64,000 bases of DNA, from positions 1 through 64,000 of the forward strand of contig NW_027437451.1 in the NCBI RefSeq assembly GCF_964204645.1, given 5' to 3'. The position numbers and the translations under genes are program-made. The notes beneath the pieces were generated by a model. The model made no database searches. It had not been told where the DNA came from and saw only the letters and a list, made by a program, of their open reading frames with translations. Shown piece after piece: positions 1,961 to 17,971 of this stretch (position 1 is the first letter of the stretch; every line of letters begins with the position of its first letter). Source of the stretch: Tubulanus polymorphus. Lineage: Eukaryota; Animalia; Nemertea.

Positions 1961-1992
1961 CCTAACCCTAACCCTAACCCTAACCCTAACCC
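1961..1992 (+). repeat. Telomeric repeat tract between PLE copies 1 and 2
   Basis: CCTAA(CCCTAA)4CCC, 32 bp. Confidence 0.97.
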
Positions 1993-2685
1993 GGATTAAA
2001 GAAGAGATCATAGTGTTTTTGAACCACTCAAACTACGCAAGCTTAAACCGATTTACTGAATACCCGCGCTCCGGTCTGAATATATTTGTCACATGTTCAA
2101 GTTCACATAGCTTTACTCGATCCTAATAACTCTAAATAAGCGTAGTTTATCTAATAGAATTATATTTAAGAACTTAGAATTAAAACAGACGTATTAGTAA
2201 GACATTTCTATCAAAACTCGTCACCCATAATTAGGGCTAATTAACCACCCGCGCTCACTCAGTAATTTAGATCTTACGGGTTATAACTTCCTACTAAATC
2301 GCCGACGCCGCGCTGTCTAATTCATCCAATTTTCGGTAGAATACCGCGTAGATATTTCAAGATCCGCTCTTAAAATCTTTAGAATACGGAGAAAACTTGA
2401 TTAACTAGGAACCGGATTTCACCATTTACGACTATTTAGTAAACACGCGTATATCGGAATACGCCCCGGCCGCGCACCGCTAATTAACGCGTCTAAACTA
2501 ATTAGGAATTAAGCAATTTTGAAACTGAACTCGGACATATTTCGAACATTCCGGTTCACGTATATTAATAATACATATTCTAGATTTCTCTTTATAGAAA
2601 ACACTTTGAGTATTTATTAGGTTATATCGAAATAAACTTTTCAATTCTATATTAGACACGCCGTTCTTTAGATCTCTAGAACTAT

Positions 2686-2842
2686 ACATCAAAGCAAACT
2701 ATTCAACAGCTAGATCAAGGGCCATAATTAGTGCTGTTTTCTAGTCACTCTGGATCAAAGGCATAATTAGTCAGACCCCTAGTTTGTCTATTAGCTTGAT
2801 CACAGAAGTACAATTAGTCTAGATCACAAGGTCTCATATGGT
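2686..2842 (+). promoter_or_regulatory. Cluster of degenerate ~23-bp repeats upstream of the TATA box (putative enhancer)
   Basis: CTAGATCAAGGGCCATAATTAGT (2710), CTGGATCAAAGGCATAATTAGT (2750), CTTGATCACAGAAGTACAATTAGT (2795), CTAGATCACAAGGTCTCATATGGT (2819), plus ACATCAAAG at 2686. Confidence 0.45.
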
Positions 2843-2889
2843 CACTTAACTTCTAACTCGAATACTGTTCACTTGTTGCGCGCTGCGTG

Positions 2890-2920
2890 TATAAAAACCC
2901 GTGTCTAATCCTAGTTCAGC
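2890..2920 (+). promoter_or_regulatory. Putative Pol II core promoter (TATA + Inr-like)
   Basis: TATAAAA at 2890-2896; TTCAG with its A at 2918, 28 nt after the first T. Same motif at 7983 and 13791. Confidence 0.55.
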
Positions 2921-4483
2921 ATGATTCCTGCACTGACACTGACGAAGGCAACCTCGCCGAAATATCTGTCAATGGAGCGATCTACTCGAAAGAAGAAACG
3001 ACCACCAGCTGAGAAGACCAGCAAGGGCGGAGGACGCCCTGAGCGACACCAGCAACCCGGGATGTCGCCGAAAAATTACTATAGAGCTCTTCAAGTGGCG
3101 CACCACCTTGCCCAGTTGAGCTCTGGTCCGAAAGCGATTCGGAGGAAGAAGGACCATCTGAAGATGTTCCTGCGGCCGGCGGCTTGCACCGAAGCAGTAA
3201 CGGTGCAGCTGCACGCTGCCGCGGACGTCTGGATGGAGACAGTTTCGAAAGAGCTGACCATCCATTACGCTGCCACATTTGTTCAGCTAATGGGTGATCC
3301 TCTGCCGGACTGTCTATCAGCACAGGATGTCGCCCTGACATGGGCCCGGAGGAATTTCGGCTCCCGTCTGAGCCCCGGAACGATCCGGCTTTTCAACATC
3401 GCGCTGGATTTGCGGTCGAAATTCCGCGGTCAGGCTCTGTCTGACAAACTCAGAAATGTCCTATCTAACCCACCTTCTTCCCCTTCTCATTTCAGGTCAC
3501 ACCACCAGGAGGCACCCACGGAGCCGAAGATTCGTCCGCCGCCGAGACCGAGCCGGAAGATTCGAAAGCCCGCGACGCCGAGGACGCCTGCACCAACCGC
3601 AGCCGCGCCCGCCGCGCCCACAGCGCCTCCTTCTTTTTCTGATTCCAGGTCACCGAGAAGCTACGCGGATGTCACCAGGACGCCACCAACCAGAATGGCG
3701 CCACCACCGAGAAGCCCGATGCCGACGCCGCCGCCGCCGCCACCAAGAAGTCCGACGCCACCGAGAAGTCCGACGCCGCCGCCTCGAAACCCGACGCCGC
3801 CGCCGCCGCAGAGAACGCCGACCGCACCAACCAGCAGTCCGACGCCGTCTCTCTCTTCTTCTCTTTCCAGCTCTCCGTCTCATTACAGGTCACCAGGGCG
3901 CCTACTGCCAGCGCGAAGTCCGACGCCAACACCGAGACCGATGGCGCCCCAGGAAGTTCGCCGTCATCCGAAAACGGGTCGGAAGAAACAGGATTGGAGT
4001 CTGCCACCAACCCGGCGACCCATTCTGGTGATTGGTGACTCAAATCTGAGTAACATCACATCAAGCCGCCGTCCGGATGACGTCCAGATCGAGAGCTTCC
4101 CCGGCTGCAAGATAGCTCATCTCGCCGACCTGATCGATGCTGTACCGGAGCGCCGAGATCGCCCGGATACGGTGATCATCAGCGTCGGAATCAACAACCG
4201 CGACAACAACTTCGAAGCGACCGCCAAGAAGACCACACAGCGCCTGATCAACGCCGCAGTCAAGAAGTATCAGCACTCGTTCGTCCACTTCGTTCAACTC
4301 AACACGACCCGCGAACACCAGCAGTTCGCCCGGAAGTTCAACGAATTCCTCGAGAATCACGACGACGTCACCGCGATACCACCCATCGATGATCGACGCT
4401 TCAGAGTTGTTGGAGACGGGATCCACTGGAACCGTGGTACAGCTAACACCCTGCTGGACCACTGGCTCAGTGGTTTAAACTAA
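2921..4483 (+). CDS. PLE ORF1: basic N-terminus, Pro/Ser/Arg-rich linker, C-terminal SGNH/GDSL hydrolase
   Basis: SGNH blocks ILVIGDSN, FPG, ISVGINN, DGIH; RSPTPP repeats. The true start may be the ATG at 2972. Confidence 0.9.
   Translation: MIPALTLTKATSPKYLSMERSTRKKKRPPAEKTSKGGGRPERHQQPGMSPKNYYRALQVAHHLAQLSSGPKAIRRKKDHLKMFLRPAACTEAVTVQLHAAADVWMETVSKELTIHYAATFVQLMGDPLPDCLSAQDVALTWARRNFGSRLSPGTIRLFNIALDLRSKFRGQALSDKLRNVLSNPPSSPSHFRSHHQEAPTEPKIRPPPRPSRKIRKPATPRTPAPTAAAPAAPTAPPSFSDSRSPRSYADVTRTPPTRMAPPPRSPMPTPPPPPPRSPTPPRSPTPPPRNPTPPPPQRTPTAPTSSPTPSLSSSLSSSPSHYRSPGRLLPARSPTPTPRPMAPQEVRRHPKTGRKKQDWSLPPTRRPILVIGDSNLSNITSSRRPDDVQIESFPGCKIAHLADLIDAVPERRDRPDTVIISVGINNRDNNFEATAKKTTQRLINAAVKKYQHSFVHFVQLNTTREHQQFARKFNEFLENHDDVTAIPPIDDRRFRVVGDGIHWNRGTANTLLDHWLSGLN
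2931..2974 (+). ncRNA. Minimal type I hammerhead ribozyme motif (copy 2)
   Basis: CACTGACA-CTGACGA-A-GGC aacctc GCC-GAAA-TATC^TGTCAATG: stem I TGACA/TGTCA, cores CUGANGA and GAAA, stem II GGC/GCC, palindromic AUAU stem III; predicted cut after 2966. Confidence 0.85.
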
Positions 4484-4510
4484 GTATTAGTGAGACCAAC
4501 GGGTCCACTA
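4474..4510 (+). promoter_or_regulatory. Putative programmed -1 ribosomal frameshift signal (copy 2)
   Basis: T TTA AAC directly before the ORF1 TAA, 7-nt spacer, hairpin TAGTG-a-GACC aacg GGTC-CACTA; the -1 frame is the ORF2 frame, open from 4447. Confidence 0.8.
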
Positions 4511-4638
4511 TTGGTGAGTTAAATCAACCGGAATTAACCAATGCTTCTCTGATTTCTTCCATTTCCAGGTCCGACGAACACGAAGAACCGGCACCAAACC
4601 AAGCGCGACGCGATCCGGTCACCGCTCTCGGGAGCCCG

Positions 4639-6939
4639 GTGGTCAACCTCACACGTTCACTCCGCCTAAGTCCGGCGCAACATCAGCTACTCCGAAAGGG
4701 CCTCACTTATTGCCCGACTCCAAAAATCGGTTCTGATGCCGCCGCGACCGAGCGCACCAAGGGAGTGTGCCGATTCAACCGGCTAGTGAAACTCGACCAT
4801 CACTTCCGAGACAAACCGGACCGCGAGGCTCCGCGTTTCCGTCTGCCCAGCAGTTGGGCTCCGGATGAAATAGAACCAGTAATCGCCGGGTTCTGCAACG
4901 ACGCGCACGAATTGGCTCAACAAACCAGGGATACGCGTCGCGTAAATGATAACCTCACTAAACAGGAACGCGAAGCCCTCCAGCAGCTGCGTGACAACAC
5001 TAATATTGTCATCAAAGCCGCCGATAAGGGTTCCGCTACGGTTATCATGGACCGCGACGACTACGTCCACGAAGCCATGCGCCAACTAGCCGATCTCGAG
5101 TATTATCAGCCGCTGCAGCAACCGATCTTCGAACAGACCGGGGAAGAAATTCGCGAAATCATCGAAAATATGGCTCGACGAAAAATCATCCCGCTAAAAA
5201 CCGCCGAATATCTATTACCGCCCGATAATCCGAAACAGAGGCAGTTCTATCTGCTTCCCAAAATCCATAAAGAACGCGAGAAGTGGACGGTACCCGATCG
5301 CGTACCGCCGGGGAGACCGATCGTCTCCGACTGCGGCTCCGAAACCTACGAAATTTCGGAATGGATCGACTACTATTTGCAGCCGATCGCCCGCGGTCAC
5401 CCGTCGTACGTCAAAGATACCAACCACTTTCTAGATATTTTGGCCGGTAAACAATTTAGCGCCGATGCGTTACTCGTCACCATGGACATCGATTCGCTCT
5501 ACACCAACATCCCCCACGAAGAGGGTATCGCCAGCATCCGACAAGCTCTCCGAGATAACCCAAACCCGGGACGCCCGGATGCCGAGCTGCTGAAACTACT
5601 CGAAATCAGCCTGAAGAAAAATGACTTTAACTTTAACGAAAACACATATTTACAGGTAAAAGGTACCGCAATGGGTAAGCGTTTTGCTCCTTCTTATGCC
5701 AATATCTTTGTAGCCGAATGGGAAAAAGAGGGTCTGTCCAGAAGCGAACTCCAACCATCGCTATACGCTCGGTTCATCGACGACATCTACATAGTTTGGG
5801 AACACGGCCGCGAAACGTTGATGCAATTCATCGACGTCCTACAAACAGTGAGCCGATCCATCAAACTCAAGTTCGAAATCAGCGACACCAGCGTCAACTT
5901 CCTGGACGTAACCACTTTCAAAGGCCCGCGATTCGAGACAAGTGGCACAGTAGACACCAAAGTCTACTTCAAACCAACCGATTCGCATCAATTACTACAT
6001 CGATCCTCGTTTCACCCTAAACACACATTTTCCGGTATAGTTAAAAGTCAAATTCTCCGGTTCCGGCGCATCTGCAATAACGATTCGGACTTACACGCAG
6101 CGTCCGGAACCGTCCTTAAAGTACTCAGAGGTCGTGGCTACAAAGACCGCGAACTGCGACACATCAAAAGCCAAGCTCTACGGCACCACGCCGAACGAGA
6201 TCTACGAGAACAACAACGGGCCGACGAACCGCCGAAAAAGCGTTTACCGCTTATCTTACCTCACTCCGAAGCCAACCGAACCCTAGCCCGTAACATCCGA
6301 ACCAGATTTACGGAACTGGCTACGGCCACCGGCCGGTCTGACGAGGTAACCACGGTCACCGCCTACACCAAGCACAAGAGTCTCAAAGATCTCCTAACTT
6401 CGTCGCAGCTCAAACCCACGGAGCCACCCCCTCCCCGAGTCCCCTCTTCACCGCATCGTAACAGAAATACTTCCGTTGTTTCCAATTCTTCTATTTCCAG
6501 GTCTACTCAAAGAACTCCGTCAACCCGACGTCGAGGCACCGAGAAATGCAGAACACCGAGATGTCGTACGTGTCCACTCGTCCGAGAAACAACCGTTTGC
6601 CGCAGCCACAACAAAATGCACGCGATCCGCAGCACAATTAATTGCGCGACCCGTGAAATTGTATACTGCATCGAATGCACCAAGTGCAACATGCTGTACG
6701 TCGGCCAAACCGGAATGTCTCTACGAGAACGCGTCACTCATCACGTCTCACGCATCAGAACGAAGAATTCGACTCCAGTCTCGGACCACTTCAACCAAGT
6801 CGACCACACCCGCGAACACTTTCGGGTGTACGGTCTCCAACACCTACCAGGCTCCACGAGACCGATCCGCGAAGCAGCCGAACAAGACTGGATACGACGA
6901 CTCGACACGAACACGCCCCGAGGCATGAACGTCCCGTAG
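4639..6939 (+). CDS. PLE ORF2 reverse transcriptase + GIY-YIG endonuclease (frame open from 4447; probably expressed as an ORF1 fusion)
   Basis: IKAADKG N-terminal PLE motif, RT motifs with FIDD, CxxxxCxxC linker, GIY-YIG with internal CxxC. The track start is GTG, not ATG. Confidence 0.95.
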   Translation: MVNLTRSLRLSPAQHQLLRKGLTYCPTPKIGSDAAATERTKGVCRFNRLVKLDHHFRDKPDREAPRFRLPSSWAPDEIEPVIAGFCNDAHELAQQTRDTRRVNDNLTKQEREALQQLRDNTNIVIKAADKGSATVIMDRDDYVHEAMRQLADLEYYQPLQQPIFEQTGEEIREIIENMARRKIIPLKTAEYLLPPDNPKQRQFYLLPKIHKEREKWTVPDRVPPGRPIVSDCGSETYEISEWIDYYLQPIARGHPSYVKDTNHFLDILAGKQFSADALLVTMDIDSLYTNIPHEEGIASIRQALRDNPNPGRPDAELLKLLEISLKKNDFNFNENTYLQVKGTAMGKRFAPSYANIFVAEWEKEGLSRSELQPSLYARFIDDIYIVWEHGRETLMQFIDVLQTVSRSIKLKFEISDTSVNFLDVTTFKGPRFETSGTVDTKVYFKPTDSHQLLHRSSFHPKHTFSGIVKSQILRFRRICNNDSDLHAASGTVLKVLRGRGYKDRELRHIKSQALRHHAERDLREQQRADEPPKKRLPLILPHSEANRTLARNIRTRFTELATATGRSDEVTTVTAYTKHKSLKDLLTSSQLKPTEPPPPRVPSSPHRNRNTSVVSNSSISRSTQRTPSTRRRGTEKCRTPRCRTCPLVRETTVCRSHNKMHAIRSTINCATREIVYCIECTKCNMLYVGQTGMSLRERVTHHVSRIRTKNSTPVSDHFNQVDHTREHFRVYGLQHLPGSTRPIREAAEQDWIRRLDTNTPRGMNVP

Positions 6940-7053
6940 ACCGCCTCACTACAACAATTAACTCTCACTACTTTTTTACAGGGATAACCCGCTGCCCGTG
7001 CACTAGTGGGGTCTCCAAACCTTCGGTTTGGTCCCCTAACCTCTATCTCTAAA

Positions 7054-7085
7054 CCTAACCCTAACCCTAACCCTAACCCTAACCC
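7054..7085 (+). repeat. Telomeric repeat tract between copies 2 and 3
   Basis: CCTAA(CCCTAA)4CCC, same length as 1961-1992. Confidence 0.97.
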
Positions 7086-8013
7086 GGATTAAAGAAGAGA
7101 TCATAGTGTTTTTGAACCACTCAAACTACGCAAGCTTAAACCGATTTACTGAATACCCGCGCTCCGGTCTGAATATATTTGTCACATGTTCAAGTTCACA
7201 TAGCTTTACTCGATCCTAATAACTCTAAATAAGCGTAGTTTATCTAATAGAATTATATTTAAGAACTTAGAATTAAAACAGACGTATTAGTAAGACATTT
7301 CTATCAAAACTCGTCACCCATAATTAGGGCTAATTAACCACCCGCGCTCACTCAGTAATTTAGATCTTACGGGTTATAACTTCCTACTAAATCGCCGACG
7401 CCGCGCTGTCTAATTCATCCAATTTTCGGTAGAATACCGCGTAGATATTTCAAGATCCGCTCTTAAAATCTTTAGAATACGGAGAAAACTTGATTAACTA
7501 GGAACCGGATTTCACCATTTACGACTATTTAGTAAACACGCGTATATCGGAATACGCCCCGGCCGCGCACCGCTAATTAACGCGTCTAAACTAATTAGGA
7601 ATTAAGCAATTTTGAAACTGAACTCGGACATATTTCGAACATTCCGGTTCACGTATATTAATAATACATATTCTAGATTTCTCTTTATAGAAAACACTTT
7701 GAGTATTTATTAGGTTATATCGAAATAAACTTTTCAATTCTATATTAGACACGCCGTTCTTTAGATCTCTAGAACTATACATCAAAGCAAACTATTCAAC
7801 AGCTAGATCAAGGGCCATAATTAGTGCTGTTTTCTAGTCACTCTGGATCAAAGGCATAATTAGTCAGACCCCTAGTTTGTCTATTAGCTTGATCACAGAA
7901 GTACAATTAGTCTAGATCACAAGGTCTCATATGGTCACTTAACTTCTAACTCGAATACTGTTCACTTGTTGCGCGCTGCGTGTATAAAAACCCGTGTCTA
8001 ATCCTAGTTCAGC

Positions 8014-9576
8014 ATGATTCCTGCACTGACACTGACGAAGGCAACCTCGCCGAAATATCTGTCAATGGAGCGATCTACTCGAAAGAAGAAACGACCACCA
8101 GCTGAGAAGACCAGCAAGGGCGGAGGACGCCCTGAGCGACACCAGCAACCCGGGATGTCGCCGAAAAATTACTATAGAGCTCTTCAAGTGGCGCACCACC
8201 TTGCCCAGTTGAGCTCTGGTCCGAAAGCGATTCGGAGGAAGAAGGACCATCTGAAGATGTTCCTGCGGCCGGCGGCTTGCACCGAAGCAGTAACGGTGCA
8301 GCTGCACGCTGCCGCGGACGTCTGGATGGAGACAGTTTCGAAAGAGCTGACCATCCATTACGCTGCCACATTTGTTCAGCTAATGGGTGATCCTCTGCCG
8401 GACTGTCTATCAGCACAGGATGTCGCCCTGACATGGGCCCGGAGGAATTTCGGCTCCCGTCTGAGCCCCGGAACGATCCGGCTTTTCAACATCGCGCTGG
8501 ATTTGCGGTCGAAATTCCGCGGTCAGGCTCTGTCTGACAAACTCAGAAATGTCCTATCTAACCCACCTTCTTCCCCTTCTCATTTCAGGTCACACCACCA
8601 GGAGGCACCCACGGAGCCGAAGATTCGTCCGCCGCCGAGACCGAGCCGGAAGATTCGAAAGCCCGCGACGCCGAGGACGCCTGCACCAACCGCAGCCGCG
8701 CCCGCCGCGCCCACAGCGCCTCCTTCTTTTTCTGATTCCAGGTCACCGAGAAGCTACGCGGATGTCACCAGGACGCCACCAACCAGAATGGCGCCACCAC
8801 CGAGAAGCCCGATGCCGACGCCGCCGCCGCCGCCACCAAGAAGTCCGACGCCACCGAGAAGTCCGACGCCGCCGCCTCGAAACCCGACGCCGCCGCCGCC
8901 GCAGAGAACGCCGACCGCACCAACCAGCAGTCCGACGCCGTCTCTCTCTTCTTCTCTTTCCAGCTCTCCGTCTCATTACAGGTCACCAGGGCGCCTACTG
9001 CCAGCGCGAAGTCCGACGCCAACACCGAGACCGATGGCGCCCCAGGAAGTTCGCCGTCATCCGAAAACGGGTCGGAAGAAACAGGATTGGAGTCTGCCAC
9101 CAACCCGGCGACCCATTCTGGTGATTGGTGACTCAAATCTGAGTAACATCACATCAAGCCGCCGTCCGGATGACGTCCAGATCGAGAGCTTCCCCGGCTG
9201 CAAGATAGCTCATCTCGCCGACCTGATCGATGCTGTACCGGAGCGCCGAGATCGCCCGGATACGGTGATCATCAGCGTCGGAATCAACAACCGCGACAAC
9301 AACTTCGAAGCGACCGCCAAGAAGACCACACAGCGCCTGATCAACGCCGCAGTCAAGAAGTATCAGCACTCGTTCGTCCACTTCGTTCAACTCAACACGA
9401 CCCGCGAACACCAGCAGTTCGCCCGGAAGTTCAACGAATTCCTCGAGAATCACGACGACGTCACCGCGATACCACCCATCGATGATCGACGCTTCAGAGT
9501 TGTTGGAGACGGGATCCACTGGAACCGTGGTACAGCTAACACCCTGCTGGACCACTGGCTCAGTGGTTTAAACTAA
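8014..9576 (+). CDS. PLE ORF1 (Pro-rich + SGNH hydrolase), copy 3
   Basis: Translation identical to 2921-4483. Confidence 0.9.
   Translation: MIPALTLTKATSPKYLSMERSTRKKKRPPAEKTSKGGGRPERHQQPGMSPKNYYRALQVAHHLAQLSSGPKAIRRKKDHLKMFLRPAACTEAVTVQLHAAADVWMETVSKELTIHYAATFVQLMGDPLPDCLSAQDVALTWARRNFGSRLSPGTIRLFNIALDLRSKFRGQALSDKLRNVLSNPPSSPSHFRSHHQEAPTEPKIRPPPRPSRKIRKPATPRTPAPTAAAPAAPTAPPSFSDSRSPRSYADVTRTPPTRMAPPPRSPMPTPPPPPPRSPTPPRSPTPPPRNPTPPPPQRTPTAPTSSPTPSLSSSLSSSPSHYRSPGRLLPARSPTPTPRPMAPQEVRRHPKTGRKKQDWSLPPTRRPILVIGDSNLSNITSSRRPDDVQIESFPGCKIAHLADLIDAVPERRDRPDTVIISVGINNRDNNFEATAKKTTQRLINAAVKKYQHSFVHFVQLNTTREHQQFARKFNEFLENHDDVTAIPPIDDRRFRVVGDGIHWNRGTANTLLDHWLSGLN
8024..8067 (+). ncRNA. Minimal hammerhead ribozyme motif (copy 3)
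   Basis: Same sequence as 2931-2974. Confidence 0.85.
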
Positions 9577-9603
9577 GTATTAGTGAGACCAACGGGTCCA
9601 CTA
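9567..9603 (+). promoter_or_regulatory. Putative -1 frameshift signal (copy 3)
   Basis: TTTAAAC + hairpin as in copy 2. Confidence 0.8.
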
Positions 9604-9731
9604 TTGGTGAGTTAAATCAACCGGAATTAACCAATGCTTCTCTGATTTCTTCCATTTCCAGGTCCGACGAACACGAAGAACCGGCACCAAACCAAGCGCG
9701 ACGCGATCCGGTCACCGCTCTCGGGAGCCCG

Positions 9732-12032
9732 GTGGTCAACCTCACACGTTCACTCCGCCTAAGTCCGGCGCAACATCAGCTACTCCGAAAGGGCCTCACT
9801 TATTGCCCGACTCCAAAAATCGGTTCTGATGCCGCCGCGACCGAGCGCACCAAGGGAGTGTGCCGATTCAACCGGCTAGTGAAACTCGACCATCACTTCC
9901 GAGACAAACCGGACCGCGAGGCTCCGCGTTTCCGTCTGCCCAGCAGTTGGGCTCCGGATGAAATAGAACCAGTAATCGCCGGGTTCTGCAACGACGCGCA
10001 CGAATTGGCTCAACAAACCAGGGATACGCGTCGCGTAAATGATAACCTCACTAAACAGGAACGCGAAGCCCTCCAGCAGCTGCGTGACAACACTAATATT
10101 GTCATCAAAGCCGCCGATAAGGGTTCCGCTACGGTTATCATGGACCGCGACGACTACGTCCACGAAGCCATGCGCCAACTAGCCGATCTCGAGTATTATC
10201 AGCCGCTGCAGCAACCGATCTTCGAACAGACCGGGGAAGAAATTCGCGAAATCATCGAAAATATGGCTCGACGAAAAATCATCCCGCTAAAAACCGCCGA
10301 ATATCTATTACCGCCCGATAATCCGAAACAGAGGCAGTTCTATCTGCTTCCCAAAATCCATAAAGAACGCGAGAAGTGGACGGTACCCGATCGCGTACCG
10401 CCGGGGAGACCGATCGTCTCCGACTGCGGCTCCGAAACCTACGAAATTTCGGAATGGATCGACTACTATTTGCAGCCGATCGCCCGCGGTCACCCGTCGT
10501 ACGTCAAAGATACCAACCACTTTCTAGATATTTTGGCCGGTAAACAATTTAGCGCCGATGCGTTACTCGTCACCATGGACATCGATTCGCTCTACACCAA
10601 CATCCCCCACGAAGAGGGTATCGCCAGCATCCGACAAGCTCTCCGAGATAACCCAAACCCGGGACGCCCGGATGCCGAGCTGCTGAAACTACTCGAAATC
10701 AGCCTGAAGAAAAATGACTTTAACTTTAACGAAAACACATATTTACAGGTAAAAGGTACCGCAATGGGTAAGCGTTTTGCTCCTTCTTATGCCAATATCT
10801 TTGTAGCCGAATGGGAAAAAGAGGGTCTGTCCAGAAGCGAACTCCAACCATCGCTATACGCTCGGTTCATCGACGACATCTACATAGTTTGGGAACACGG
10901 CCGCGAAACGTTGATGCAATTCATCGACGTCCTACAAACAGTGAGCCGATCCATCAAACTCAAGTTCGAAATCAGCGACACCAGCGTCAACTTCCTGGAC
11001 GTAACCACTTTCAAAGGCCCGCGATTCGAGACAAGTGGCACAGTAGACACCAAAGTCTACTTCAAACCAACCGATTCGCATCAATTACTACATCGATCCT
11101 CGTTTCACCCTAAACACACATTTTCCGGTATAGTTAAAAGTCAAATTCTCCGGTTCCGGCGCATCTGCAATAACGATTCGGACTTACACGCAGCGTCCGG
11201 AACCGTCCTTAAAGTACTCAGAGGTCGTGGCTACAAAGACCGCGAACTGCGACACATCAAAAGCCAAGCTCTACGGCACCACGCCGAACGAGATCTACGA
11301 GAACAACAACGGGCCGACGAACCGCCGAAAAAGCGTTTACCGCTTATCTTACCTCACTCCGAAGCCAACCGAACCCTAGCCCGTAACATCCGAACCAGAT
11401 TTACGGAACTGGCTACGGCCACCGGCCGGTCTGACGAGGTAACCACGGTCACCGCCTACACCAAGCACAAGAGTCTCAAAGATCTCCTAACTTCGTCGCA
11501 GCTCAAACCCACGGAGCCACCCCCTCCCCGAGTCCCCTCTTCACCGCATCGTAACAGAAATACTTCCGTTGTTTCCAATTCTTCTATTTCCAGGTCTACT
11601 CAAAGAACTCCGTCAACCCGACGTCGAGGCACCGAGAAATGCAGAACACCGAGATGTCGTACGTGTCCACTCGTCCGAGAAACAACCGTTTGCCGCAGCC
11701 ACAACAAAATGCACGCGATCCGCAGCACAATTAATTGCGCGACCCGTGAAATTGTATACTGCATCGAATGCACCAAGTGCAACATGCTGTACGTCGGCCA
11801 AACCGGAATGTCTCTACGAGAACGCGTCACTCATCACGTCTCACGCATCAGAACGAAGAATTCGACTCCAGTCTCGGACCACTTCAACCAAGTCGACCAC
11901 ACCCGCGAACACTTTCGGGTGTACGGTCTCCAACACCTACCAGGCTCCACGAGACCGATCCGCGAAGCAGCCGAACAAGACTGGATACGACGACTCGACA
12001 CGAACACGCCCCGAGGCATGAACGTCCCGTAG
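9732..12032 (+). CDS. PLE ORF2 RT + GIY-YIG endonuclease, copy 3
   Basis: Translation identical to 4639-6939. Confidence 0.95.
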   Translation: MVNLTRSLRLSPAQHQLLRKGLTYCPTPKIGSDAAATERTKGVCRFNRLVKLDHHFRDKPDREAPRFRLPSSWAPDEIEPVIAGFCNDAHELAQQTRDTRRVNDNLTKQEREALQQLRDNTNIVIKAADKGSATVIMDRDDYVHEAMRQLADLEYYQPLQQPIFEQTGEEIREIIENMARRKIIPLKTAEYLLPPDNPKQRQFYLLPKIHKEREKWTVPDRVPPGRPIVSDCGSETYEISEWIDYYLQPIARGHPSYVKDTNHFLDILAGKQFSADALLVTMDIDSLYTNIPHEEGIASIRQALRDNPNPGRPDAELLKLLEISLKKNDFNFNENTYLQVKGTAMGKRFAPSYANIFVAEWEKEGLSRSELQPSLYARFIDDIYIVWEHGRETLMQFIDVLQTVSRSIKLKFEISDTSVNFLDVTTFKGPRFETSGTVDTKVYFKPTDSHQLLHRSSFHPKHTFSGIVKSQILRFRRICNNDSDLHAASGTVLKVLRGRGYKDRELRHIKSQALRHHAERDLREQQRADEPPKKRLPLILPHSEANRTLARNIRTRFTELATATGRSDEVTTVTAYTKHKSLKDLLTSSQLKPTEPPPPRVPSSPHRNRNTSVVSNSSISRSTQRTPSTRRRGTEKCRTPRCRTCPLVRETTVCRSHNKMHAIRSTINCATREIVYCIECTKCNMLYVGQTGMSLRERVTHHVSRIRTKNSTPVSDHFNQVDHTREHFRVYGLQHLPGSTRPIREAAEQDWIRRLDTNTPRGMNVP

Positions 12033-12146
12033 ACCGCCTCACTACAACAATTAACTCTCACTACTTTTTTACAGGGATAACCCGCTGCCCGTGCACTAGT
12101 GGGGTCTCCAAACCTTCGGTTTGGTCCCCTAACCTCTATCTCTAAA

Positions 12147-12166
12147 CCTAACCCTAACCCTAACCC
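12147..12166 (+). repeat. Telomeric repeat tract between PLE copy 3 and the SINE-like dimer
   Basis: CCTAA(CCCTAA)2CCC, 20 bp. Confidence 0.95.
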
Positions 12167-12491
12167 GAGGTCACAGGAAATGACAGTCGTCGGTCTGCCC
12201 AGGTAGCTCAACTGGTAGAGCAGTCGTCCGGCAAACGAAAGGTCCGTGGTTCGAGTCCCGGTCTAGGTGGTGGACTGTGCTTTTCCCGATGCCCCTAACT
12301 CTAATGCCTTCCGACAGGTGGGAGTTAGCCTGATTTCCCGCTGCCCGTGCTCTAGTGGGGAACTGAAAAAGAAATTAATTAATACATCTCGATTAACAGT
12401 CTCGGGGGTTAATCTGAAGAACACACTTGTCATATAATTAATATTCAAATTCAAAAATTGGTTCCCCTAACCTCTATCTCTATACCTAACC
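12167..12491 (+). mobile_element. tRNA-headed SINE-like non-autonomous element, copy 1 (lacks the first ~28 nt of copy 2)
   Basis: tRNA-like head with A/B boxes; 3' motifs shared with the PLE 3' end; repeated at +353. Confidence 0.85.
12197..12269 (+). tRNA. tRNA-like sequence (anticodon GGC, Ala-like), probably a SINE head / pseudo-tRNA
   Basis: GCCCAGG TA GCTC AACTGGTA GAGC A GTCGT CCGGCAA ACGAA AGGTC CGTGG TTCGAGT CCCGG TCTAGGT G; 73 nt; A box 12204-12215, B box 12248-12258; mismatches in acceptor, anticodon and T stems. Confidence 0.8.
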
Positions 12492-12844
12492 TCAGCCTGT
12501 GCCAGGAATGAAGGAATGCGAGGTCACAGGAAATGACAGTCGTCGGTCTGCCCAGGTAGCTCAACTGGTAGAGCAGTCGTCCGGCAAACGAAAGGTCCGT
12601 GGTTCGAGTCCCGGTCTAGGTGGTGGACTGTGCTTTTCCCGATGCCCCTAACTCTAATGCCTTCCGACAGGTGGGAGTTAGCCTGATTTCCCGCTGCCCG
12701 TGCTCTAGTGGGGAACTGAAAAAGAAATTAATTAATACATCTCGATTAACAGTCTCGGGGGTTAATCTGAAGAACACACTTGTCATATAATTAATATTCA
12801 AATTCAAAAATTGGTTCCCCTAACCTCTATCTCTATACCTAACC
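12492..12844 (+). mobile_element. tRNA-headed SINE-like non-autonomous element, copy 2 (353 bp)
   Basis: Matches copy 1 from 12520; 58-nt segment before the tRNA head; ends in CCTAACC running into the telomeric tract. Confidence 0.85.
12550..12622 (+). tRNA. tRNA-like sequence (SINE head), copy 2
   Basis: Same as 12197-12269. Confidence 0.8.
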
Positions 12845-12893
12845 CTAACCCTAACCCTAACCCTAAACCTAACCCTAACCCTAACCCTAACCC
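12838..12893 (+). repeat. Telomeric repeat tract (56 bp) with one ACCTAA variant
   Basis: CCTAA(CCCTAA)4 ACCTAA (CCCTAA)3 CCC. Confidence 0.97.
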
Positions 12894-13821
12894 GGATTAA
12901 AGAAGAGATCATAGTGTTTTTGAACCACTCAAACTACGCAAGCTTAAACCGATTTACTGAATACCCGCGCTCCGGTCTGAATATATTTGTCACATGTTCA
13001 AGTTCACATAGCTTTACTCGATCCTAATAACTCTAAATAAGCGTAGTTTATCTAATAGAATTATATTTAAGAACTTAGAATTAAAACAGACGTATTAGTA
13101 AGACATTTCTATCAAAACTCGTCACCCATAATTAGGGCTAATTAACCACCCGCGCTCACTCAGTAATTTAGATCTTACGGGTTATAACTTCCTACTAAAT
13201 CGCCGACGCCGCGCTGTCTAATTCATCCAATTTTCGGTAGAATACCGCGTAGATATTTCAAGATCCGCTCTTAAAATCTTTAGAATACGGAGAAAACTTG
13301 ATTAACTAGGAACCGGATTTCACCATTTACGACTATTTAGTAAACACGCGTATATCGGAATACGCCCCGGCCGCGCACCGCTAATTAACGCGTCTAAACT
13401 AATTAGGAATTAAGCAATTTTGAAACTGAACTCGGACATATTTCGAACATTCCGGTTCACGTATATTAATAATACATATTCTAGATTTCTCTTTATAGAA
13501 AACACTTTGAGTATTTATTAGGTTATATCGAAATAAACTTTTCAATTCTATATTAGACACGCCGTTCTTTAGATCTCTAGAACTATACATCAAAGCAAAC
13601 TATTCAACAGCTAGATCAAGGGCCATAATTAGTGCTGTTTTCTAGTCACTCTGGATCAAAGGCATAATTAGTCAGACCCCTAGTTTGTCTATTAGCTTGA
13701 TCACAGAAGTACAATTAGTCTAGATCACAAGGTCTCATATGGTCACTTAACTTCTAACTCGAATACTGTTCACTTGTTGCGCGCTGCGTGTATAAAAACC
13801 CGTGTCTAATCCTAGTTCAGC

Positions 13822-15381
13822 ATGATTCCTGCACTGACACTGACGAAGGCAACCTCGCCGAAATATCTGTCAATGGAGCGATCTACTCGAAAGAAGAAAC
13901 GACCACCAGCTGAGAAGACCAGCAAGGGCGGAGGACGCCCTGAGCGACACCAGCAACCCGGGATGTCGCCGAAAAATTACTATAGAGCTCTTCAAGTGGC
14001 GCACCACCTTGCCCAGTTGAGCTCTGGTCCGAAAGCGATTCGGAGGAAGAAGGACCATCTGAAGATGTTCCTGCGGCCGGCGGCTTGCACCGAAGCAGTA
14101 ACGGTGCAGCTGCACGCTGCCGCGGACGTCTGGATGGAGACAGTTTCGAAAGAGCTGACCATCCATTACGCTGCCACATTTGTTCAGCTAATGGGTGATC
14201 CTCTGCCGGACTGTCTATCAGCACAGGATGTCGCCCTGACATGGGCCCGGAGGAATTTCGGCTCCCGTCTGAGCCCCGGAACGATCCGGCTTTTCAACAT
14301 CGCGCTGGATTTGCGGTCGAAATTCCGCGGTCAGGCTCTGTCTGACAAACTCAGAAATGTCCTATCTAACCCACCTTCTTCCCCTTCTCATTTCAGGTCA
14401 CACCACCAGGAGGCACCCACGGAACCGAAGATTCGTCCGCCGCCGAGACCGAGCCGGAAGATTCGAAAGCCCGCGACGCCGAGGACGCCTGCACCAACCG
14501 CAGCCGCGCCCGCCGCGCCCACAGCGCCTCCATCTTTTTCTGATTCCAGGTCACCGAGAAGCTACGCGGATGTCACCAGGACGCCACCAACCAGAATGGC
14601 GCCACCACCGAGAAGTCCGATGCCGACGCCGCCGCCGCCACCAAGAAGTCCGACGCCACCGAGAAGTCCGACGCCGCCGCCTCGAAACCCGACGCCGCCG
14701 CCGCCGCAGAGAACGCCGACCGCACCAACCAGCAGTCCGACGCCGTCTCTCTCTTCTTCTCTTTCCAGCTCTCCGTCTCATTACAGGTCACCAGGGCGCC
14801 TACTGCCAGCGCGAAGTCCGACGCCAACACCGAGACCGATGGCGCCCCAGGAAGTTCGCCGTCATCCGAATACGGGTCGGAAGAAACAGGATTGGAGTCT
14901 GCCACCAACCCGGCGACCCATTCTGGTGATTGGTGACTCAAATCTGAGTAACATCACATCAAGCCGCCGTCCGGATGACGTCCAGATCGAGAGCTTCCCC
15001 GGCTGCAAGATAGCTCATCTCGCCGACCTGATCGATGCTGTACCGGAGCGCCGAGATCGCCCGGATACGGTGATCATCAGCGTCGGAATCAACAACCGCG
15101 ACAACAACTTCGAAGCGACCGCCAGGAAGACCACACAGCGCCTGATCAACGCCGCAGTCAAGAAGTATCAGCACTCGTTCGTCCACTTCGTTCAACTCAA
15201 CACGACCCGCGAACACCAGCAGTTCGCCCGGAAGTTCAACGAATACCTCGAGAATCACGACGACGTCACCGCGATACCACCCATCGATGATCGACGCTTC
15301 AGAGTTGTTGGAGACGGGATCCACTGGAACCGTGGTACAGCTAACACCCTGCTGGACCACTGGCTCAGTGGTTTAAACTAA
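13822..15381 (+). CDS. PLE ORF1 (Pro-rich + SGNH hydrolase), copy 4
   Basis: 519 aa; one Pro fewer and K>N, K>R, F>Y versus copy 2; catalytic motifs intact. Confidence 0.9.
   Translation: MIPALTLTKATSPKYLSMERSTRKKKRPPAEKTSKGGGRPERHQQPGMSPKNYYRALQVAHHLAQLSSGPKAIRRKKDHLKMFLRPAACTEAVTVQLHAAADVWMETVSKELTIHYAATFVQLMGDPLPDCLSAQDVALTWARRNFGSRLSPGTIRLFNIALDLRSKFRGQALSDKLRNVLSNPPSSPSHFRSHHQEAPTEPKIRPPPRPSRKIRKPATPRTPAPTAAAPAAPTAPPSFSDSRSPRSYADVTRTPPTRMAPPPRSPMPTPPPPPRSPTPPRSPTPPPRNPTPPPPQRTPTAPTSSPTPSLSSSLSSSPSHYRSPGRLLPARSPTPTPRPMAPQEVRRHPNTGRKKQDWSLPPTRRPILVIGDSNLSNITSSRRPDDVQIESFPGCKIAHLADLIDAVPERRDRPDTVIISVGINNRDNNFEATARKTTQRLINAAVKKYQHSFVHFVQLNTTREHQQFARKFNEYLENHDDVTAIPPIDDRRFRVVGDGIHWNRGTANTLLDHWLSGLN
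13832..13875 (+). ncRNA. Minimal hammerhead ribozyme motif (copy 4)
   Basis: Same sequence as 2931-2974. Confidence 0.85.
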
Positions 15382-15408
15382 GTATTAGTGAGACCAACGG
15401 GTCCACTA
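15372..15408 (+). promoter_or_regulatory. Putative -1 frameshift signal (copy 4)
   Basis: TTTAAAC + hairpin unchanged. Confidence 0.8.
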
Positions 15409-15431
15409 TTGGTGAGTTAAATCAACCGGAA

Positions 15432-17837
15432 TTGACCAATGCTTCTCTGATTTCTTCCATTTCCAGGTCCGACGAACACGAAGAACCGGCACCAAACCAA
15501 GCGCGACGCGATCCGGTCACCGCTCTCGGGAGCCCGGTGGTCAACCTCACACGTTCACTCCGCCTAAGTCCGGCGCAACATCAGCTACTCCGAAAGGGCC
15601 TCACTTATTGCCCGACTCCAAAAATCGGTTCTGATGCCGCCGCGACCGAGCGCACCAAGGGAGTGTGCCGATTCAACCGGCTAGTGAAACTCGACCATCA
15701 CTTCCGAGACAAACCGGACCGCGAGGCTCCGCGTTTCCGTCTGCCCAGCAGTTGGGCTCCGGATGAAATAGAACCAGTAATCGCCGGGTTCTGCAACGAC
15801 GCGCACGAATTGGCTCAACAAACCAGGGATACGCGTCGCGTAAATGATAACCTCACTAAACAGGAACGCGAAGCCCTCCAGCAGCTGCGTGACAACACTA
15901 ATATTGTCATCAAAGCCGCCGATAAGGGTTCCGCTACGGTTATCATGGACCGCGACGACTACGTCCACGAAGCCATGCGCCAACTAGCCGATCTCGAGTA
16001 TTATCAGCCGCTGCAGCAACCGATCTTCGAACAGACCGGGGAAGAAATTCGCGAAATCATCGAAAATATGGCTCGACGAAAAATCATCCCGCTAAAAACC
16101 GCCGAATATCTATTACCGCCCGATAATCCGAAACAGAGGCAGTTCTATCTGCTTCCCAAAATCCATAAAGAACGCGAGAAGTGGACGGTACCCGATCGCG
16201 TACCGCCGGGGAGACCGATCGTCTCCGACTGCGGCTCCGAAACCTACGAAATTTCGGAATGGATCGACTACTATTTGCAGCCGATCGCCCGCGGTCACCC
16301 GTCGTACGTCAAAGATACCAACCACTTTCTAGATATTTTGGCCGGTAAACAATTTAGCGCCGATGCGTTACTCGTCACCATGGACATCGATTCGCTCTAC
16401 ACCAACATCCCCCACGAAGAGGGTATCGCCAGCATCCGACAAGCTCTCCGAGATAACCCGAACCCGGGACGCCCGGATGCCGAGCTGCTGAAACTACTCG
16501 AAATCAGCCTGAAGAAAAATGACTTTAACTTTAACGAAAACACATATTTACAGGTAAAAGGTACCGCAATGGGTAAGCGTTTTGCTCCTTCTTATGCCAA
16601 TATCTTTGTAGCCGAATGGGAAAAAGAAGGTCTGTCCAGAAGCGAACTCCAACCATCGCTATACGCTCGGTTCATCGACGACATCTACATAGTTTGGGAA
16701 CACGGCCGCGAAACGTTGATGCAATTCATCGACGTCCTACAAACAGTGAGCCGATCCATCAAACTTAAATTCGAAATCAGCGACACCAGCGTCAACTTCC
16801 TGGACGTAACCACTTTCAAAGGCCCGCGATTCGAGACAAGTGGCACAGTAGACACCAAAGTCTACTTCAAACCAACCGATTCGCATCAATTACTACATCG
16901 ATCCTCGTTTCACCCTAAACACACATTTTCCGGTATAGTTAAAAGTCAAATTCTCCGGTTCCGGCGCATCTGCAATAACGATTCGGACTTACACGCAGCG
17001 TCCGGAACCGTCCTTAAAGTACTCAGAGGTCGTGGCTACAAAGACCGCGTACTGCGACACATCAAAAGCCAAGCTCTACGGCACCACGCCGAACGAGATC
17101 TACGAGAACAACAACGGGCCGACGAACCGCCGAAAAAGCGTTTACCGCTTATCTTACCTCACTCCGAAGCCAACCGAACCCTAGCCCGTAACATCCGAAC
17201 CAGATTTACGGAACTGGCTACGGCCACCGGCCGGTCTGACGAGGTAACCACGGTCACCGCCTACACCAAGCACAAGAGTCTCAAAGATCTCCTAACTTCG
17301 TCGCAGCTCAAACCCACGGAGCCACCCCCTCCCCGAGTCCCCTCTTCACCGCATCGTAACAGAAATACTTCCGTTGTTTCCAATTCTTCTATTTCCAGGT
17401 CTACTCAAAGAACTCCGTCAACCCGACGTCGAGGCACCGAGAAATGCAGAACACCGAGATGTCGTACGTGTCCACTCGTCCGAGAAACAACCGTTTGCCG
17501 CAGCCACAACAAAATGCACGCGATCCGCAGCACAATTAATTGCGCGACCCGTGAAATTGTATACTGCATCGAATGCACCAAGTGCAACATGCTGTACGTC
17601 GGCCAAACCGGAATGTCTCTACGAGAACGCGTCACTCATCACGTCTCACGCATCAGAACGAAGAATTCGACTCCAGTCTCGGACCACTTCAACCAAGTCG
17701 ACCACACCCGCGAACACTTTCGGGTGTACGGTCTCCAACACCTACCAGGCTCCACGAGACCGATCCGCGAAGCAGCCGAACAAGACTGGATACGACGACT
17801 CGACACGAACACGCCCCGAGGCATGAACGTCCCGTAG
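15432..17837 (+). CDS. PLE ORF2 RT + GIY-YIG endonuclease, copy 4
   Basis: Same motifs; DRELR>DRVLR; the track's TTG start arises from a TTA>TTG substitution. Confidence 0.95.
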   Translation: MTNASLISSISRSDEHEEPAPNQARRDPVTALGSPVVNLTRSLRLSPAQHQLLRKGLTYCPTPKIGSDAAATERTKGVCRFNRLVKLDHHFRDKPDREAPRFRLPSSWAPDEIEPVIAGFCNDAHELAQQTRDTRRVNDNLTKQEREALQQLRDNTNIVIKAADKGSATVIMDRDDYVHEAMRQLADLEYYQPLQQPIFEQTGEEIREIIENMARRKIIPLKTAEYLLPPDNPKQRQFYLLPKIHKEREKWTVPDRVPPGRPIVSDCGSETYEISEWIDYYLQPIARGHPSYVKDTNHFLDILAGKQFSADALLVTMDIDSLYTNIPHEEGIASIRQALRDNPNPGRPDAELLKLLEISLKKNDFNFNENTYLQVKGTAMGKRFAPSYANIFVAEWEKEGLSRSELQPSLYARFIDDIYIVWEHGRETLMQFIDVLQTVSRSIKLKFEISDTSVNFLDVTTFKGPRFETSGTVDTKVYFKPTDSHQLLHRSSFHPKHTFSGIVKSQILRFRRICNNDSDLHAASGTVLKVLRGRGYKDRVLRHIKSQALRHHAERDLREQQRADEPPKKRLPLILPHSEANRTLARNIRTRFTELATATGRSDEVTTVTAYTKHKSLKDLLTSSQLKPTEPPPPRVPSSPHRNRNTSVVSNSSISRSTQRTPSTRRRGTEKCRTPRCRTCPLVRETTVCRSHNKMHAIRSTINCATREIVYCIECTKCNMLYVGQTGMSLRERVTHHVSRIRTKNSTPVSDHFNQVDHTREHFRVYGLQHLPGSTRPIREAAEQDWIRRLDTNTPRGMNVP

Positions 17838-17951
17838 ACCGCCTCACTACAACAATTAACTCTCACTACTTTTTTACAGGGATAACCCGCTGCCCGTGCA
17901 CTAGTGGGGTCTCCAAACCTTCGGTTTGGTCCCCTAACCTCTATCTCTAAA

Positions 17952-17971
17952 CCTAACCCTAACCCTAACCC
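17952..17971 (+). repeat. Telomeric repeat tract at the PLE/satellite junction
   Basis: CCTAA(CCCTAA)2CCC; the last CCCTAACCC coincides with the satellite's own motif (CCCTAACCC-ATCATTTAAGAT). Confidence 0.95.

Follow-up and report, generated by a model that had tools for sequence, protein, structure and literature searches.

The left end of contig C34 in the assembly of the nemertean Tubulanus polymorphus (268 Mb, 77 contigs) bears a short repeated unit lodged between copies of a Penelope-like element (PLE). This raises the question of what the unit is and which enzyme copies it. A preliminary description of the window, i.e. the whole stretch of 64,000 nt that was analysed, proposed a Pol III-type SINE mobilised by the PLE. 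Of that proposal, a short non-coding element with the terminal signal of the PLE and moved as the PLE is moved can be kept, and the Pol III-type SINE finds no support in the anatomy of the unit. The reading favoured here, at a probability of about 0.7, is a non-coding, non-autonomous retroelement copied by the reverse transcriptase (RT)-endonuclease protein of a 6.35-kb PLE. Integration would be at telomeric repeats in the PLE style, as partial tandems and multicopy head-to-tail insertions.

The PLE copies of the window lie on one strand (Table 1), and each is followed by 2–4 CCCTAA repeats. ORF2 has matches to the RVT_1 and GIY-YIG domains (GIY-YIG 21.3 bits, residues 674–755), and relatives of the protein carry PF01541; at NCBI, a T. 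polymorphus protein matches that of the PLE at 97% identity. The PLE copies are 99–100% identical to one another and the 353-bp units are 100% identical, and therefore both are recent. The PLE starts at 1990, 7083 and 12891 represent 5′ truncation at one same base, with loss of a 1.27-kb extension. This extension is present at the left end of C10, where a 73-nt PLE 3′ fragment is directly followed by 1276 nt that run into PLE position 3 (L031:1493-2768). It is also found on C8, itself 5′-truncated and placed after telomere repeats (L033:6712-7757). In the PLE arrays of C4 and C54 the period is 6354, or 5084 + about 1270, which indicates a full PLE of ~6.35 kb and truncation of all window copies at one point.

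The PLE is not limited to telomeres. Interior copies are many and their 3′ ends also stop at CCTAACC; about 12 of the 20 inspected continue into short telomere-like sequence. Four of the 20, in the interior of C9 and C11 (L065, L066, L068, L071), are followed by the same sequence, CCGCCCCGATTCCCGGCC…, which could be either a preferred target within another repeat or part of a larger duplicated block.

The short unit is a perfect 353-bp direct repeat, and the window dimer, a 5′-truncated copy plus a full copy, is a partial tandem. Coding capacity is negligible in that the longest open reading frame in a 15-unit array has 63 aa, and no reading frame there begins with ATG. The 3′ end is a degenerate telomere C-strand tail, with no poly(A) and no simple-repeat tail.

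Table 1. Features of the C34 window, with arrays and copies of families A and B in the assembly
Feature	Position	Strand	Remarks
PLE copy	1–1980	same strand as the other PLE copies	cut by the window edge
PLE copy	1990–7073	same strand
PLE copy	7083–12166	same strand
PLE copy	12891–17971	same strand
3′ end of PLE copy adjoining the unit	12081–12166	+
PLE block A	12081–12104	+	24 nt
PLE UUCG hairpin	12105–12125	+	21 nt; fold z = −3.6
PLE block B and degenerate telomere-like tail ending CCTAACC	12126–12153	+	28 nt
CCCTAA repeats after the PLE tail	up to 12166	+
Unit copy 1, outer (younger-side), 5′-truncated	12167–12491	+	without unit positions 1–28; joined to CCCTAA repeats
Unit copy 2, complete 353-bp unit	12492–12844	+	TCAGCC to CCTAACC
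Leader	12492–12549	+	58 nt
tRNA-like part	12550–12622	+	A- and B-box-like motifs; copy 1 counterpart 12197–12269
T4 run, the only one in the unit	12634–12637	+	12 nt past the tRNA-like part; same place in families B and X
Predicted hairpin, CTAACTC/GAGTTAG	12644–12684	+	85% identity, family A vs B
Block A of unit	12690–12713	+	23/24 vs PLE; stem CCCGCT/AGTGGG and 11-nt loop predicted
AT-rich insert	12714–12816	+	103 nt, in place of the 21-nt PLE hairpin; folds as a single long hairpin
Block B and telomere-like tail	12817–12844	+	27/28 vs PLE
CCCTAA repeats, about eight, in phase with the tail	12845–12890	+	between the unit and the next (older) PLE copy
Family A array	C10 left end		~16 units
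Family A array	C8 left end		7 units
Family A array	C66		15 units
Family A array	C34 (window)		2 units
Family A single truncated copy	C10:35787
Family A single truncated copy	C16:168394
Family B array	C65		26 units
Family B array	C32 right end		5 units
Family B array	near C7 right end		4 units
Family B array	near C10 right end		4 units
Family B	C10:16109		2 units
Family B	start of C9

The tRNA relationship noted in the preliminary description is borne out by the Rfam tRNA model, which scores 47.3 bits in both copies (gathering score 29). A B-box, GGTTCGAGTCC, and an A-box-like motif, TAGCTCAACTGG, are present. The fold is degenerate, with a C at position 33, one acceptor-stem mismatch and two G-U pairs, and ARAGORN finds no tRNA anywhere in the window. 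The tRNA-like part is thus a derived copy and not a gene. With Rfam at E up to 1, positions 8000–16000 give these two tRNA matches only, hammerhead and telomerase RNA being absent, and the sole CUGANGA of the unit lacks the stem II and GAAA of a hammerhead.

Unit and PLE are linked at their ends. Block A is found in the unit at 12337–12360 and 12690–12713 and block B at 12464–12491 and 12817–12844, each with one mismatch relative to the PLE, exactly as first described; 100 shuffles gave no chance match to either block. Also confirmed is the difference between the blocks, where the PLE has its 21-nt hairpin and the unit a 103-nt insert flanked by GGGGAAC and GTTCCCC. Genome-wide, block A occurs 192 times vs none for a reversed control, and the matches listed are all at PLE or unit 3′ ends, many interior PLE ends included. 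In older interior A-like copies, the base at which block B differs is that of the PLE version.

The 5′ ends are related as well. The leader start at 12494–12506 (AGCCTGTGCCAGG) matches the 5′ end of the full-length PLE, where AGCCCGTGCCAGG stands directly past a tail junction. The PLE extension begins TTAGCCCGTGCCAGG and family A units begin TCAGCCTGTGCCAGG, with close variants in families B and X, and the units of all these families start directly after a CCTAACC junction. Over the first ~15 nt, unit and PLE agree at 12 of 13 bases at a fixed offset, far beyond chance. The common motif indicates that full-length PLEs and full-length units make the same tail-to-head junction. Upstream of block A, the PLE 3′ UTR is colinear with the unit at weak similarity (116/2000 shuffles, p about 0.06), the left half of the hairpin at 12644–12684 included. 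A resemblance of the leader to the block A region was dropped, being not significant for family A (437/1000 shuffles) and marginal for family B (41/1000).

In single-sequence folds of the RNA, a hairpin is closed by pairing between the G4 run in block A and the C4 run in block B. The tops of this hairpin are unrelated in sequence and length in the PLE and families A, B and X (z = −3.6, −1.5, −3.2 and −3.2), and the replaceable part measures 103 nt in A, about 88 in B and 40 in X. RNAalifold on eight copies gives zero compensatory pairs and prefers a hairpin within block A over the G4/C4 closure, and the G4 run therefore has two competing predicted pairings. Eleven distinct versions of block A differ from one another only in the predicted loop or by wobble-compatible changes in the stem. 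The module of two conserved blocks around a freely replaceable hairpin is solid. The blocks themselves are putative cis-signals for mobilisation.

A genome-wide check for further copies and their flanks shows that the unit is no one-off chimera; arrays are found at many ends with CCTAACC/CCCTAA junctions. Family A, to which the window copies belong, has ~45 units with a period of 353, identical and arranged head-to-tail at six or more chromosome or contig ends; 35 of 36 full units from four contig ends are identical. Family B (~45 units of 335–337 bp, periods 334–338, five or more ends) is 80% identical to A. Between the two, identity is 95% in the tRNA-like part, which is the most conserved segment, 84–86% in blocks A and B, 70% in the insert and 64% in the leader. 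Nearly all copies of families A and B belong to telomeric arrays; about six are interior. The 171-nt head alone as a genome query reveals no large interspersed family, and its 101 candidates are mostly array units.

Family X, reached via weak matches to the tRNA part, consists of about 40 diverged copies (68–94% identity) dispersed over many chromosomes, and is older. It has a leader with the same start motif, the tRNA-like part, T4 at the same offset and an unrelated body, followed by a variant block A, an unrelated 40-nt hairpin, a variant block B ending CCTAACC and telomere-like flanks. About 80 nt precede the tRNA-like part vs 58 nt in A and B, and the acceptor stem is degenerate. Partial tandems of X are seen at several interior loci. 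That families A, B and X have the same plan indicates that the architecture represents a lineage and not an accident.

Two observations concern family X and its relatives. A 5′-truncated X copy on the minus strand at C10:10269067-10269337 (L041:1060-1330) is bordered on either side by the same 20–24-nt sequence, CTCTGGACCCTTTCCCTACC. The pair is a candidate target duplication, but the motif is part of a degenerate telomere-like repeat that occurs beside many PLE ends. A sequence with an inverted family-X-like tRNA part recurs at four or more ends, ~200 nt in from the terminal telomere tract (L047:520-1500, L044:1915-2900, C16:166103, C8:13325; 98% identical between C51 and C9).

The junctions show how the units came to lie where they are. 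All arrays are oriented as the PLEs are, their 3′ ends facing the chromosome interior, and in orientation and CCCTAA junctions the window units are the same as the four PLE copies, as originally proposed. Of 12 arrays, 11 stop on the inner side exactly at CCTAACC, from where CCCTAA repeats continue in phase, and none ends at the two other telomere-like 7–8-mers inside the unit. The outer ends are variable. Family A units are cut at about positions 28, 74, 102, 116 and 237, and what adjoins the cut is either CCCTAA repeats or the 3′ end of a PLE followed by two repeats. Inward of the arrays, the neighbouring sequences differ, and include the PLE from position 1 or from position 1399, family B units, 1.4 kb or 2 kb of telomere, and variant telomere repeats. 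At six sites the 3′ end is exact, the 5′ end ragged and the flanks unrelated, a pattern that marks repeated reverse transcription from the 3′ end and not the recombinational transfer of a single block. It should be pointed out that the C7 and C10 right-end arrays have an equal number of units and an equal cut point, and thus some end-to-end exchange is likely.

Three interior copies of the short element are 5′-truncated and have the canonical 3′ end (C10:10269319, C2:3912860 and C4:9664612, B-type). One adjoins a degenerate telomere-like flank as is found beside interior PLEs, and another has the flank CCTAACCAC…TTCTTGAATCTTACC, which is also present after two interior PLE copies. PLE-like mobilisation of the unit, as first suggested, is well supported by telomeric attachments that are many and independent, exact at the 3′ end and variably truncated at the 5′ end, by these interior truncated copies, by the three related families, and by the 5′ terminal motif in common with the PLE.

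Two junctions are of a different kind. On C65, where family B forms a 26-unit array, the inner end consists of the first ~60 nt of a unit fused to PLE position 1188 (L035:8757-8830); this inner end is not a tail and is a misfit to a simple tail-priming model. A PLE fragment in C10:10001-10401 stops within the element, at CCGCCTAA (PLE position 2680), and telomere repeats follow from there (at C10:10393). Its copying was apparently primed by pairing at this internal telomere-like 5-nt match.

Two telomere tracts should also be mentioned. The tract at C10:36023-36183 contains a regular variant, CCCTAACCCTAACCCTGAGA, and is not pure CCCTAA. The truncated family A copy on C16 (168388–168599, minus strand) lies on the outer side of a 2-kb telomere tract that is followed by >20 kb of non-repeat sequence; a misjoin, an old healed end and an interstitial telomere are the candidate readings.

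A mechanism can be proposed from these features. The unit has the 3′ module of the PLE, in which blocks A and B enclose a predicted stem whose top can be exchanged and a tail ending CCUAACC follows, as well as the first ~15 nt of the PLE, with an old tRNA-derived segment and filler between these ends. The C-strand tail of the RNA would pair with G-strand telomeric DNA, either at a natural chromosome end or at a GIY-YIG nick in telomere-like sequence, and from there synthesis could be primed by annealing; the interior copies speak for a nuclease route. The RT, bound to a 3′ module whose blocks it may recognise, would copy the RNA toward the 5′ end, and a frequent early stop would give the 5′ truncations. 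On reaching the 5′ end it may move on to the tail of another template, which would lead to partial tandems and head-to-tail arrays, and telomerase would then add CCCTAA repeats. Spacer-free arrays may reflect template jumping or multimeric templates, with units perhaps added later by unequal exchange. The polymerase that makes the RNA is possibly the one that transcribes the PLE. Elsewhere, PLE insertions are typically a 5′-truncated plus a full copy in partial tandem, telomeric PLEs have telomere repeats added onto truncated 5′ ends (PMC3846280), and non-autonomous Chlamys PLEs have common 3′ ends and multicopy head-to-tail insertions (PMC8557442).

A further proposal concerns the arrays themselves and is speculative and rather doubtful. 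The PLE RT, a sister of telomerase RT, might build an array in a single event: once at the shared 5′ motif, it would start again on the tail of the copy just read or of a different one. In this case the unit would serve as a giant repeat-addition template by which chromosome ends grow, in parallel with telomerase, and the element would belong to the end maintenance of this worm and be no mere parasite.

Several findings count against copying by the PLE. Among the matches listed, no PLE bears the block A version of family B or X, and the partnership for these families therefore depends on a signal that has diverged. Unequal exchange would also produce perfect 353-bp periodicity and 100% identity, and copy number is low (~45 A, ~45 B, ~40 X). 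The periodicity and the near-zero divergence in arrays raise the question of whether the unit is a subtelomeric satellite, i.e. one chimeric cDNA of a PLE 3′ end and a tRNA pseudogene that turned into a tandem repeat and spread at the DNA level only, by unequal exchange, break-induced replication and end exchange, with no ongoing retrotransposition. The location of arrays at ends only and the likeness of the C7 and C10 right-end arrays in unit number and outer cut point would also follow, and the telomere tracts on either side would permit recombination. However, the six family A sites differ in proximal flanks, unit numbers and cut points and yet have the same exact 3′ end, and single truncated copies are present at C10:35787 and on C16. 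In addition, the interior 5′-truncated copies keep intact 3′ ends, and the dispersed family X has the same architecture together with partial tandems. An exact 3′ and ragged 5′ end is the asymmetry of reverse transcription, not of exchange, and an origin by DNA-level spread appears quite improbable.

The remaining alternatives concern the RNA template and center on the tRNA-like part. Its Rfam score, its A- and B-box motifs and its 95% conservation between A and B are what a classical Pol III SINE would show, where a monomer transcribed from these internal boxes is the template. Such transcription is nevertheless unlikely. The tRNA-like part begins 58 nt from the start of the unit in A and B and ~80 nt in X, a distance too great for a type-2 Pol III start at the 5′ end of the unit, and the conserved T4 12 nt downstream would stop many transcripts before the 3′ module, if termination is as efficient as assumed here. 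Moreover, outer cut points are not clustered near the tRNA start, families A and B lie almost entirely in telomeric arrays (X is dispersed), and the 5′ end of the unit is that of the PLE, which points to PLE-like transcription. One may also envisage a retrozyme-like cycle in which RNase P or RNase Z cuts array transcripts at the tRNA-like fold, circles possibly form, and the PLE RT copies the products. Non-LTR retrozymes are regarded as tandem arrays that derive from PLE termini (preprint 10.64898/2026.07.22.740005), and although the unit has no hammerhead, it has a strongly conserved internal tRNA-like fold. Yet the acceptor stem is poor, with its mismatch and two G-U pairs, and is degenerate in X, and neither cut points nor array junctions coincide with the borders of the tRNA-like part; a cycle of this type has very little probability.

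With the PLE as the likely source of the enzyme, the unit can be compared with other dependent elements. Stringent LINE–SINE pairs, e.g. UnaL2/UnaSINE1 of the eel, share a 3′ stem-loop and terminal repeats. The unit resembles the SINE of such pairs in being short and non-coding, in having a tRNA-related part and the 3′ module of its partner below unrelated upstream sequence, and in 5′ truncation. It differs in that the partner is a PLE, with GIY-YIG and a telomerase-related RT, and that a 5′ terminal motif is also common to both; further differences are the internal tRNA-like part followed by T4, the partial tandems and arrays, and the telomere C-strand tail. With respect to the SINE class as a whole, the tRNA-related A/B-box part and the partner-shared 3′ end are present, but the partner is not a LINE, the promoter-bearing head is not at the 5′ end, and T4 lies inside the body. 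A full-text search of one literature collection found no SINE or tRNA-derived element partnered with a PLE, only non-autonomous PLEs and retrozymes.

Non-autonomous PLEs are the closer relatives. The unit has the 3′ similarity, 5′ truncation and non-coding nature of such elements, and partial tandems or arrays of 2 to 26 units. The non-autonomous Chlamys PLEs, e.g. MRC1 of Chlamydomonas, are likewise non-coding, with 3′-end similarity, pseudo-LTRs and head-to-tail multicopy insertions (Craig et al. 2021, PMC8557442). In contrast to the unit, they are non-telomeric members of the N-terminal-EN PLEs of green algae and lack a tRNA-derived part (PMC8557442). Animal non-LTR retrozymes are also tandem units of a few hundred bases related to PLE termini, for which PLE enzymes are proposed, and their multimers in Xenopus are enriched near chromosome ends (preprint 10.64898/2026.07.22.740005). 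They differ in having a type I hammerhead in every unit, where the nemertean element has none, and instead has a tRNA-like part and telomere-like tail.

Telomeric retroelements in one orientation include TRAS/SART of Bombyx, which are specific for telomere repeats, and HeT-A/TART of Drosophila, and the RT of HeT-A is supplied in trans. These are LINE-type and none is short and tRNA-derived; at the Tubulanus ends, telomerase repeats are present and interleaved. The EN-deficient Athena/Coprina PLEs and Terminons are similar in uniform orientation, 3′ reverse-complement telomere repeats, stacked arrays and telomere repeats on truncated 5′ ends, and a tRNA-headed passenger of Athena is not described in the texts consulted (PMC8557442, PMC3846280). 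The partner PLE differs from Athena/Coprina in its GIY-YIG domain and many interior copies. It represents an EN+ PLE that behaves like EN-deficient telomeric PLEs, with telomerase repeats interleaved, in a nemertean. To our knowledge, there are no telomere studies in this phylum.

SINEs are, as far as we know, treated as LINE-dependent by definition, and the only PLE-dependent passengers known to us are algal deletion-type elements and hammerhead retrozymes. If the PLE does copy the unit, a tRNA-headed element with three families and both termini shared with its partner would mean that the SINE strategy is also used with the third great class of retrotransposon enzymes. The natural comparison would also define the minimal cis-module of the RT, i.e. 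two short blocks, a stem with a variable top and a telomere-like tail. We know of no in vitro system as yet for PLE reverse transcription.

Additional features of the PLE copies and their surroundings were observed. A hammerhead-like core, CUGACGA with a short GC stem and GAAA, is found at window positions 8020–8075 and also at about 13830–13870. It sits about 0.95 kb into the window PLE unit and is absent from the Rfam report at E up to 1. On C10 (L031:1329-1499), a PLE fragment (positions 4662 to 4571) lies in inverted form and adjoins PLE position 5006, with the junction inside block A and just under the terminal telomere tract; the fragment looks like snap-back cDNA. A 102-bp satellite begins right after the innermost PLE copy of the window and forms a 46-kb array (17972–64000). 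It has a higher-order pattern in which every third unit is about 96–98% alike, and a strong skew of C over G.
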